Assembly (NCBI RefSeq): GCF_902459465.1
Contig: NC_047072.1
Location: 8,618,001-8,682,000 of the forward strand
Direction: 5' to 3'
DNA length: 64,000 bases
Source of the DNA: Asterias rubens
Taxonomy: Eukaryota
The notes beneath the pieces are model-generated. The model was given only the letters and a program-made list of their open reading frames with translations, ran no database searches and was not told the origin of the DNA. Positions within the stretch are counted from its first letter, which is position 1; the number at the start of each line of letters is the position of its first letter. The translations under genes and the position numbers were made by a program. This document shows, piece by piece, positions 15,228-34,193 of the stretch.

Positions 15228-18200
15228 ATGAGTACGCGACTGTTGCTCATTTTGGGCCACGCTTTGACATTTGTTGTGTGTCTGACATCAGCCTACGATC
15301 TGACCATTCTACACACTAACGATGTCCACGCTCACTTCGACCAGTTCGATAAGTACAGCACTCGGTGCGACGATGATGAGTCAGCGAACGGGCAGTGCTT
15401 CGGCGGGGTGGCCAGGACGGTCACCAAGGTCCGGCAAATACGTTCCGAGGTGGACAACGTGGTGCTGCTGGATGCCGGTGATCAGTACCAGGGAAGCACG
15501 TGGTTCAGCTTTTACAAGGGGCAAGCGACCTCACATTTCATGAATATAATCGGATACGACGCTATGGTATGTATATACCTTTTAGAGGAATTGTGCCATC
15601 CGATGTTGCGATCCTGACATAGTTTACTGCAGGATGATGACATCATGAATATTAAAGATGACAAAACCATGTGAGATGATTTAACTCGGGATGACGAAAT
15701 CCTATTAAAGGAAGATGTCGTCTTCCTCATTTTATCTTGTGATGTAGAAATTATGTTGAGTATAATATGTCGATTTCCTGGGATAAGTTACCTCTGGAGT
15801 AAAACATCCTGAAAATGTCGATAGACCCGAAATAAAGTTATCTTGCGAAGACAACACCCCACTTAAAAGATGTCGTCATCTCGAGACAAATCATCCCATG
15901 ATGTTGTCATCTTACGTTTATGATGTCATCATCTTGCAGTAAATAAACCAATGACCCCCTGAGATTCCAGGATCACTGAGATCCCAGAGATTAGAACATA
16001 CAAACAAAATGAGGTGGTTTTGTTCACAAGAGAGACACTCAAGACATGACTGTATATTCCTTTATCATGGAGTAATCCATTTTTTTAGTTTAAATACTGT
16101 TTCAGATGTAGTGCGTTTTTGGCTATTATTCTCATTGATTGCTATTCTAACCAGACACTGGGAAACCACGAGTTCGACAACGGACCCGATGGGCTGACAC
16201 AGTTTCTGAACGACCTAGACGCCCAGGTGGTTTGCGCCAACCTGGACGCCAGCAACGAACCGGCAATAGACGGACTGTTCACCAAGAGCACGGTGCTGGC
16301 GGTCGGCGGGGAAAAGATTGGAATCGTCGGGTACACGGCTTCAAATATGCTTGAGATTTCTAATACCGGTAACGTCACTTGACAAGCAAATGTTGTAGTT
16401 AATAGAAGTGTTATGGTATGTTATTCTTAAACATATAAATTTGTCTTCTTTGCTTATGAGGTACACCAAAGTTTTACAAGAAGAGCGCGTTGGTTCACAT
16501 CCTCTTATTTTCATCTGACCGAAGCACATTACAAAGACCTGGGCCCAATTTCATAAAGCTGCTTTGCTTTAGCAAAAAAATCCTTGCCCAGTAAAATCAG
16601 GTTACCGGCAAAGACTCCACTCAATTGTTATGCTAAGTAAACAACAGCTAAATACCAGTCACAAGCAATGCATATGGCATGACATTTTTGCCAGTAACAT
16701 GTGAAAAATAAGCGAGCTATTTTCGTGCTTAAGCAACATTTTTGCTTAAGCAGCTCTATTAAATTGGTCCCTGAATGCAGCGATAACGAGAACGATGTAA
16801 CGACGCAAAGAGAACACATTATATTGGTCGGATAAGCGTTTGCGTATTCCGCGTGGAGCAACTCCACCAATACAATGCGTTCTCTGGGCGTCGTGATCGT
16901 TATCGTTCACGATATCGCTGCAGTGTGACTCGGCAAAGTTGTGACACAATTTATGCATTATTTTTTTTACCATATTCATTCCTTTTACCTATGATTACAA
17001 TTTACCCCCCCCCCCAAAAAAAAAAAAAAATAAAAATAAAAAAAAAATTGTTTGTTTAATAGAAAGTTTTCTTAACATCTGGGTGCATAACGATGGAACA
17101 TTTTCACAGAATAACATGTTCCTAAGAAATCAAAACCAATGTTCAACTCACGTTCGTCCCTTCAACCTGTATGATATAGTTGGAAACCTGGTGTTCATGG
17201 ATGAGGTATCATCCATCCAAGCAGAGGTTGACCGACTCATAGCGGTAGAGGGCGTCAACAAGATAATCGCTTTGGGACACTCTGGCTACGATGCGGACCA
17301 GAAGATCGCCCGGGAAGTTCGTGGCCTGGATGTCGTGGTCGGAGGTCATTCAAACACATTCCTGTACACCGGTGAGAAAAAAAAGGGAAAAGAAACAATT
17401 TTAAACTGCAATAAAAATTGAAGCAATCTCCTCTATGAAACAGACCGTGAAGCTTTTGAAGCCGTTGGGTATCACCGACTAGAATCCACTGTGCAGAATG
17501 AAAAAAAAAGAATAAAAAAAAAGGGTAGGCCAATATTGGTTATCGTGGTCCCCACAAACCTAGATGAGTGCTTTCGGCCAGGTTCCCATATAGTCCGCGG
17601 GAATTCCACCGCAACTTGGGGGGGGGGGGGGGGGCGGGGGGGGGGTAGACCTCTCCATCCCGTGTTGACTGACCACCTTCTCGCCCCTTTCCTGCTTATT
17701 TGTACGTCTGTCTTTAACGTCTGCATTTCTCATAGTCCAAAAGAGACGATATTCGCATCATAGACTGTACACTGTAAACAATATTCGTAAAATTTACGGC
17801 ACTTTATCTGGTATAGCTAGGGTGCAAGGTAAAGTGCCGTAAATTTCACGGTGGAAGTTTTGTAAACTACCCCTTCATCAAGGCACAATTTACGAAACTG
17901 TCACCGTGAAATTTACGACACTTTACCTGGCACCCTAGCTGCCAGGTAAAGTACCGTAAGTTGTACGGATATTTTTTACAGTGATAGTTTTTCCATAACG
18001 TTTGTGTTCGATTTCTGATTATAGGTGAACCACCTGAGACCACAAGCCCGATAAAGGGACCCTACCCGACCGTCGTGCACCCAGACGCCGATCCAACCAC
18101 CAGTGTACTTGTTGTGCAGGATTACAAGTTTGGGATGTATCTCGGGCGCCTGGACGTGATGTTTGATGATGACGGCAAGGTCACCGGCTGGGGAGGCAAT

Positions 18201-34193: not shown

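Follow-up and report, generated by a model that had tools for sequence, protein, structure and literature searches.

What becomes of an ecto-5'-nucleotidase when its gene is doubled in tandem, and one of the two copies carries neither the complete nucleoside pocket nor the hydrophobic tail? The question is raised by two neighbouring genes, here called copy 1 and copy 2, in a stretch of 64,000 nucleotides from the starfish Asterias rubens (contig NC_047072.1; the whole stretch is referred to as the window, and positions are counted from its first letter). The 5'-nucleotidases are a family of extracellular enzymes that have repeatedly been recruited to secretions such as venoms and insect saliva, and CD73, the human member, is a major drug target. 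Our preferred reading, to which we give a probability of about 0.6, is that copy 2 is a conventional anchored ecto-5'-nucleotidase and copy 1 a maintained secreted metallophosphoesterase with altered nucleoside recognition.

Both genes were modelled from exon pieces among the plus-strand open reading frames between 15.2 and 34.2 kb, joined at canonical GT..AG sites (Table 1). All introns are GT..AG, their phases are identical in the two copies, and exon lengths are equal except for codon-unit differences in exons 1, 4 and 7 and the tail of exon 8. A profile search with the exon translations led to two RefSeq proteins that match the models with 100% identity, XP_033635029.1 for copy 1 and XP_033635028.1 for copy 2, both named "5'-nucleotidase-like [Asterias rubens]". 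A preliminary description of this locus had proposed two intact tandem genes with the same 8-exon structure, and these same-strand models agree with it. It had also called the case undescribed, which holds insofar as we found no paper mentioning either accession or any Asterias or sea-star 5'-nucleotidase, and fails insofar as both genes are already RefSeq models. Each protein carries PF00149 (Metallophos; 56.7 bits in copy 1, 58.1 bits in copy 2) and PF02872 (5_nucleotid_C; 112.6 and 130.4 bits, respectively), above the gathering threshold and in the N- to C-terminal order of the 5'-nucleotidase/UshA family. A tblastn scan of the whole window found no further copy. The A. rubens genome holds five NT5E-like loci in total, the tandem pair included; copy 2 is one among at least three tailed paralogues there, and nothing identifies it as the housekeeping enzyme for which it had been taken.

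Residues of the two copies were assigned by alignment to human CD73 (7QGM numbering, which is the native numbering) and placed in a 178-sequence alignment of animal homologues. The di-metal ligands D36, H38, D85, N117, H220 and H243 and the catalytic dyad H118/D121 are present in both copies and in their orthologues from Asterias amurensis, and the di-metal site of copy 1 is thus intact, as had been described. Both copies also have N245, keep the phosphate ligands Arg354 and Arg395 together with Asn390, and are aromatic at position 500 (Phe in copy 1, Tyr in copy 2). The nucleoside pocket is where they part. Copy 2 retains P416, F417 and D506, so that its aromatic base clamp and ribose ligand are complete, whereas copy 1 is without the full set, carrying P416S, F417L, G418P, G393E and D506N and a GG loop after position 506 that is shorter by one residue. 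This alteration of the pocket, too, had been recognised in the earlier account. The A. amurensis orthologue of copy 1 has the same pocket substitutions, but one extra Gly in the GG loop (a GGT insertion after 20188).

The residues found in copy 1 at these positions are rare in the family. Position 416 is Pro in 176 of the 178 homologues, with Ser only in the two copy 1 orthologues, and position 417 is aromatic in 175, with Leu in copy 1. Glu occupies position 393 in two sequences, both of them copy 1 orthologues, and Asp occupies position 506 in 154, with Asn in copy 1. No homologue other than the two copy 1 orthologues has the copy 1 states at 393, 416 and 417. In CD73 structures with bound AMP (adenosine monophosphate), Phe417 and Phe500 sandwich the base, Asn390 and Asp506 bind the ribose, and Arg354 and Arg395 bind the phosphate (PMC8677862). 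From the residue states and these roles together, the catalytic and phosphate-binding parts of copy 1 are therefore intact, and its nucleoside-recognising part is altered. An AlphaFold2 (AF2) model of copy 1 has a two-domain fold with a C-terminal substrate-binding domain (predicted local distance difference test score, pLDDT, 89; predicted template modelling score, pTM, 0.83), and it superposes on closed human CD73 with template modelling (TM) scores of 0.92-0.95 and a root-mean-square deviation of about 2 Å. Given this confident CD73-like superposition, the fold of copy 1 is not degraded.

The two proteins also differ at their ends. Each N-terminus combines a basic residue with a hydrophobic core and a ..TSA/YD junction aligned with the mature N-terminus of human CD73, and both look like signal peptides with a small-residue -3/-1 site, at which cleavage is predicted. 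The copies are similar in DNA from codon 17 (15276/22851) onwards and unrelated in the 16 codons before it and in the upstream sequence, in line with the different leader and signal peptide first noted for copy 1. C-terminal tails were scored by the best 12-residue Kyte-Doolittle (KD) window, which reaches 1.34 in copy 1 and 2.81 in copy 2. After the conserved ..RRIT(F/L) motif region, copy 2 has a hydrophobic stretch of 15 residues, encoded at 34137-34181, and its C-terminus has the features of a glycosylphosphatidylinositol (GPI) signal, so that the protein would be expected to receive a GPI anchor. In the tail of copy 1 charges are interspersed, there is no other transmembrane-like segment in the protein, and the 23-residue tail and the stop are identical in A. 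amurensis. A hydrophobic tail as in copy 2 is found in 140 of the 178 homologues, in hamster CD73 and in every other asteroid relative. The other 38 homologues are tail-less, three Holothuria paralogues among them, and a tail-less paralogue is therefore not rare in itself.

Contigs of four RNA-like runs were aligned to 15200-21199: two runs of organism A (X1 and X2), one of organism B (X3) and a marine metatranscriptome (X5). Of the words sampled from 15100-21000, X1 contains 0.30 and X2 0.27, equal to the exonic share. All seven copy 1 introns are skipped exactly by contigs of the four runs, with GT..AG at every joint, and the X1 contigs have 0 mismatches to copy 1. No processed retrocopy was found in the A. 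rubens genome, and because the genome holds none, the spliced contigs derive from mRNA. The X3 contigs carry the GGT insertion after 20188 and substitutions matching the A. amurensis orthologue; copy 1 is therefore expressed in the second species too. Contigs of exon 8 pass the stop (20845-20847) without a splice and extend at least as far as 20877/20879, and a further contig reaches 21145. No alternative terminal exon, which would give an anchored copy 1 isoform, was seen in these contigs, which run unspliced into the 3' untranslated region (3'UTR). Copy 1 is transcribed and correctly spliced, its message encodes the short tail, and the absence of a hydrophobic tail, which the preliminary description had reported, applies to the transcripts as well as to the gene. 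In X5, spliced copy 1 pieces are 99-100% identical to the window (16339-19657), which suggests Asterias material in the marine sample, perhaps larvae.

A maximum-likelihood tree of 52 deuterostome and outgroup sequences places the Patiria (600 aa) and Acanthaster (578 aa) sequences together as sister to a group formed by the Asterias 580-aa gene and, next to it, copy 1 with copy 2, with starred support. The duplication therefore took place in the forcipulatid/Asterias lineage, after the split from Valvatida and before the split of A. rubens from A. amurensis, and both genes are present in the same order in the two Asterias species. What had been proposed as an echinoderm case is thus narrowed to this lineage. 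Since the duplication the copies have evolved at unequal rates. The stem branch of copy 1 measures 0.37 vs 0.11 for copy 2, and Tajima-type relative-rate counts with Patiria as outgroup give 69 unique replacements in copy 1 and 30 in copy 2 (p = 1e-4), of which 45 and 17 lie within the C-terminal domain. At sites invariant in the five other asteroid sequences, copy 1 differs at 32 and copy 2 at 6. The acceleration of copy 1 falls mostly on the stem after the duplication.

In A. amurensis a third, copy-2-like gene lies between the two orthologues (L001:16712-24139, equal to L002:544-7971). It is represented by XP_071801403.1 (557 aa, "LOW QUALITY PROTEIN"); its exons 1 and 2 deviate in length by 1 nt, exon 8 is truncated, and the gene is probably a young pseudogene or an assembly error. 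At the corresponding place A. rubens has only about 2 kb, mostly long interspersed nuclear element (LINE) sequence.

Does the altered pocket imply an altered enzyme? Copy 1 might still be an ordinary 5'-nucleotidase, acting on AMP and other nucleoside monophosphates, that differs from copy 2 only in localisation (soluble, not anchored) and expression, with the drift in its pocket tolerated because constraint is somewhat relaxed, and the pair would then be a case of subfunctionalisation and not of a new specificity. This agrees with the intact catalytic centre, R354, R395, N390 and F500 and with the confidently CD73-like fold, F-to-L and D-to-N both conserve shape, the promoters and leaders of the two copies differ, and soluble CD73-type enzymes of normal specificity exist (snake-venom 5H7W and 7D0V). 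We nevertheless consider it possible but unlikely. Positions 416 and 417 are Pro and aromatic in 175-176 of the 178 homologues, including annotated apyrases, and Glu393 occurs nowhere else; four changes round one ligand together with a loop deletion are unlikely to leave affinity untouched; and the replacements in copy 1 are concentrated in the substrate-binding domain.

The divergence of the two copies is far from uniform along the gene. Their synonymous difference is 0-0.12 per site over codons 30-90 and 120-150 and 0.17 around codon 450, and reaches 0.7-0.8 in exons 5, 6 and 8, where dS is 1.4-3.1. Two tracts of near identity were delimited in exons 1 and 2 (Table 1), the former with a synonymous difference of 0.06-0.12. 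DNA similarity between the copies is restricted to exons; their introns are unalignable. At four sites in the first 500 nt the two copies of a species agree with each other and differ from both copies of the other species, and K/R and A/V amino-acid states switch in parallel in both genes between species. Overall, the duplication is old, and exon-limited gene conversion continues to homogenise its 5' exons. One A. rubens contig of X2 (15309-15487) differs from the window at seven exon 1 sites and agrees with copy 2 at five of them; either a segregating conversion tract or a chimeric assembly would account for it.

A more radical proposal builds on this mosaic. Copy 1 would be a secreted phosphoesterase that has left nucleoside-monophosphate specificity altogether, its catalytic half being refreshed continually by conversion from copy 2 while selection holds the binding half apart. 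We regard so complete a departure as doubtful. Its substrates might be dinucleotides, NAD, nucleotide sugars, cyclic or oligonucleotide ends, or non-nucleotide phosphate esters, and its setting might be the secretions, whether digestive, coelomic or of the body surface, of a predator with extra-oral digestion of prey.

It is also conceivable that copy 1 has no function and is decaying, although still transcribed, with its 5' half kept open by conversion from copy 2. Conversion demonstrably patches exons 1-3, copy 1 evolves faster and has lost its anchor signal and near-invariant pocket residues, and the frameshifted copy-2-like neighbour in A. amurensis indicates that decay occurs in this cluster. 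Between A. rubens and A. amurensis, copy 1 has dN 0.023 and dS 0.040 (omega 0.58, not formally below 1; binomial p vs neutrality 0.058), and copy 2 has dN 0.029 and dS 0.095 (omega 0.31, p = 7e-7). Because the dS of the two copies disagree, the introns of each gene were used as its neutral standard, their Jukes-Cantor (JC) divergence being 0.044 in copy 1 and 0.052 in copy 2. Against this standard, nonsynonymous change is reduced to about the same degree in both genes (copy 1 odds 0.53, p = 0.0013; copy 2 odds 0.55, p = 0.0003), and also in the C-terminal domain of copy 1 taken alone (odds 0.56, p = 0.044). In both species the unconverted exons 5-8 of copy 1 have kept an open reading frame and canonical splicing, even though their synonymous divergence from copy 2 is saturated (dS of 1.4 or more). 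With a nonsynonymous rate about half of neutral and with these exons open, copy 1 is therefore constrained, recently no less than copy 2, and its divergence is not the neutral one that a decaying duplicate would have. Since all catalytic residues are retained and the mRNA is correctly spliced in two species as well, we judge decay improbable.

Between the species, copy 2 has a synonymous divergence of 0.095, roughly double that of its introns (0.052; p = 0.0009), and there is no such excess in copy 1. A possible source is conversion by the extra copy-2-like gene of A. amurensis.

CD73 is a homodimer that dimerises through its C-terminal domains, and a literal two-component enzyme, in which a tail-less copy 1 and a GPI-anchored copy 2 form a heterodimer with two different active sites at the cell surface, has this precedent, the adjacency of the genes and the apparent presence of both transcripts in the same RNA-like runs on its side, but it is highly improbable given that the C-terminal domain is the most diverged part of copy 1 and that promoters and leaders are unrelated. 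Nothing links the copies functionally beyond tandem paralogy, and the idea of a two-component system is not supported.

Several points weigh against our preferred reading. Leu may pack against the base and Asn may form a hydrogen bond with the ribose, and AMP hydrolysis by copy 1 may persist. The classical dN/dS of copy 1 lies only marginally below 1, the intron-calibrated test being the stronger one. We found no copy 1 orthologue outside the genus, and long-term conservation rests on two species and the age of the duplication; a search for fragmentary orthologues with a C-terminal-half query gave none at E<=1e-30 among proteins of 129-411 aa, the lengths covered. The runs are flagged as RNA-like only by guess, and the mRNA origin of the contigs rests on their splice joints. 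Expression of copy 2 is supported indirectly, by the share of its words in X1 and X2 (0.14-0.15 of those of 28100-34400, with an exonic share of about 0.19).

On the reading that we prefer, one asteroid NT5E-like gene was duplicated in tandem, lineage-specifically. Copy 2 has kept the ancestral design, with its signal peptide, di-zinc phosphoesterase centre, complete nucleotide site and GPI-type signal, and it would most likely be a cell-surface ecto-5'-nucleotidase converting nucleoside monophosphates to nucleoside and phosphate. In copy 1 nothing of the catalytic machinery is missing, and the signal peptide and phosphate-binding arginines are retained; the anchor signal is lost, one clamp arm has changed from Phe to Leu and the ribose Asp to Asn, and neighbouring loop residues are replaced. 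Copy 1 would most likely be soluble, secreted and still able to hydrolyse phosphate esters, with weakened or altered nucleoside recognition resulting in a changed substrate preference or affinity. Conversion keeps the catalytic N-terminal halves nearly identical while the substrate-binding C-terminal halves diverge. As for the neofunctionalisation that was originally suggested, copy 1 is expressed, conserved and constrained, and has a fast substrate-binding domain, rare pocket states and no tail. Two outcomes named beforehand as refuting the suggestion, an unexpressed copy 1 and a dN/dS near 1 throughout, were thus not observed; secretion, its tissue and a new substrate are the parts of that suggestion which we would retain as predictions.

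How the tail was lost is a separate matter. A truncated LINE copy lies in the 3'UTR of copy 1 (Table 1), with an ORF2 C-terminal fragment at 21254-21844 on the minus strand, and its family has at least 40 genomic copies that are up to 98% identical. At the orthologous site of A. amurensis ..AAGTTAAT runs directly into ..AAAAGAGTGG, and the same 23-residue tail and stop are present with no repeat. The insertion is therefore specific to A. rubens, lies in the 3'UTR and is not the cause of the tail-less state. Removal of the GPI signal by the antisense LINE is ruled out, as the repeat starts 3 nt past the stop and is absent in A. amurensis. The LINE family was therefore active after the two species separated. 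An RNA-like contig of depth 277 covers 20862-21145, within the LINE. A premature stop at the former hydrophobic stretch was also considered and not retained. The tails of the two copies are collinear in length up to ..LI(S/V), and past the first ~20 nt there are 16/45 identities, which 358 of 2000 shuffles equalled; the downstream alignment was equalled by 1632 of 2000. The collinear premature-stop scenario is suggestive, with a similarity that is not above chance.

Several features surround the pair. A major facilitator superfamily (MFS) sugar-transporter gene lies upstream on the minus strand (A. amurensis L001:1-7814), and a gene downstream of copy 2 occupies about 36970-42376 of the window (A. 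amurensis L002:23810-29849, 547 aa, no Pfam hit on record). The start codon of copy 1 is preceded, at a distance of roughly 0.65-1.3 kb, by two tandem-repeat arrays. Very-high-depth contigs of the RNA-like runs (up to about 79,000) match repeats in copy 1 introns 2 and 5, at 16400-16999 and 19000-19399; these are abundantly transcribed repeat families, outside the copy 1 mRNA. Intron 1 of copy 2, which is 3.6 kb long in A. rubens and 1.7 kb in A. amurensis, contains a large and nearly perfect inverted repeat (23451-24559 and 24763-25842) with arms of about 1.1 kb that are 87-97% complementary and about 200 nt between the innermost arms, resembling a foldback element.

Table 1. Features of the tandem pair and its surroundings (window positions unless another sequence is named; CDS, coding sequence)
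Feature	Position	Strand	Remarks
Copy 1 gene	15228-20847	+	8 exons, 569 codons + stop; XP_033635029.1 (P0153), 569 aa
Copy 1 CDS exons 1-4	15228-15566, 16155-16368, 17180-17371, 18025-18231	+	GT-AG model
Copy 1 CDS exons 5-8	18610-18858, 19542-19697, 20040-20237, 20693-20847	+	GT-AG model
Copy 1 signal-peptide part	15228-15293	+	residues 1-22, predicted cleavage after TSA; core KD 2.1
Copy 1 codon GAA (Glu393)	18834-18836	+	human Gly393 position, N390-G-G-G-I-R395 loop
Copy 1 codons Ser413-Leu414-Pro415	19577-19585	+	replace family Pro416-Phe417-Gly418, one adenine-clamp arm
Copy 1 codon Asn504	20192-20194	+	human Asp506 position (ribose hydroxyl ligand)
Copy 1 C-terminal tail	20776-20847	+	23 residues after ..RRITF, TAA at 20845-20847; no hydrophobic stretch
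Copy 2 gene	22794-34193	+	8 exons, 587 codons + stop; XP_033635028.1 (P0152), 587 aa
Copy 2 CDS exons 1-4	22794-23141, 26745-26958, 28146-28337, 29394-29597	+	GT-AG model
Copy 2 CDS exons 5-8	30204-30452, 31578-31733, 33347-33547, 33994-34193	+	GT-AG model
Copy 2 signal-peptide part	22794-22868	+	residues 1-25, predicted
Copy 2 GPI-type signal (candidate)	34077-34193	+	stop 34191-34193; C-N-A-G-S cluster, polar spacer, hydrophobic stretch
Conversion tract, exon 1	15276-15584	+	extends 18 nt into intron 1; 92% identity with copy 2 at 22851-23163
Conversion tract, exon 2	16161-16336	+	96% identical to 26751-26926; flanking introns unalignable
Truncated LINE copy	20851-21851	-	copy 1 3'UTR, 3 nt behind the stop; (AAT)n-type 3' tail at left
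Tandem-repeat array	13898-14187		53/105-bp units, about 5 copies
Tandem-repeat array	14203-14580		133-bp units, about 3 copies
Other NT5E-like loci, A. rubens genome (G000)	C12:3.33 Mb, C12:4.05 Mb, C11:13.42 Mb		two share the window's chromosome

A secreted, GPI-less family member with a shifted substrate belongs to a known category; the unusual aspects of this case are its particular pocket replacements and its mosaic of conversion and divergence. Ligand recognition by CD73 depends on the Phe417/Phe500 clamp and Asp506. Copy 1, a natural variant maintained by selection, keeps the catalytic centre but is without one clamp arm and the ribose Asp, and it can serve as a natural test of how these residues shape specificity. 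The pair is a clean example of mosaic evolution, with a catalytic domain homogenised by conversion and a diverging binding domain, and for echinoderm biology copy 1 points to an extracellular, soluble phosphoesterase confined to sea stars of the Asterias type. Should copy 1 prove to be an ordinary AMPase in soluble form, the finding would amount to routine gene-family bookkeeping.

Compared with human NT5E/CD73 (PDB 4H2I, 7QGM), both starfish copies are 43-46% identical over the full length. The likeness extends to the fold (TM 0.94 for the copy 1 model), the metal ligands, the His-Asp dyad, Asn245, Arg354, Arg395, Asn390 and the signal peptide, and in copy 2 alone to the aromatic clamp, Asp506 and the GPI-type tail. 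Copy 1 differs from CD73 by Leu417, Ser416, Glu393, Asn506, the shorter GG loop and the absence of a hydrophobic C-terminal signal, and both starfish copies are without the human Cys365-Cys387 pair. The nearest relatives, at 55-60% identity, are A. rubens XP_033636041.1 (580 aa) and the sequences of Patiria miniata (600 aa) and Acanthaster planci (578 aa), and unlike copy 1 all of them have a hydrophobic tail and a canonical pocket.

The tsetse salivary 5'Nuc apyrase is a secreted member of the family without a GPI signal and with a different substrate (PMC2843633). This enzyme, the mosquito salivary apyrases and the snake-venom 5'-nucleotidases (PDB 5H7W, 7D0V) belong to the same family as copy 1 and are likewise soluble, with the GPI signal missing. 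In the insect secreted members the substrate range is shifted to ATP and ADP (adenosine tri- and diphosphate). All of these secreted enzymes have an origin independent of that of copy 1. Sequences annotated as apyrase or 5NUC in the 178-sequence alignment keep an aromatic residue at 417, unlike copy 1. Among echinoderms, the Holothuria leucospilota paralogues (P0277-P0279) are also tail-less and also derive from a lineage-specific duplication, although the event was independent; where copy 1 has a short tail, these proteins carry long, acidic C-terminal extensions, and they are without the copy 1 states at 393, 416 and 417.

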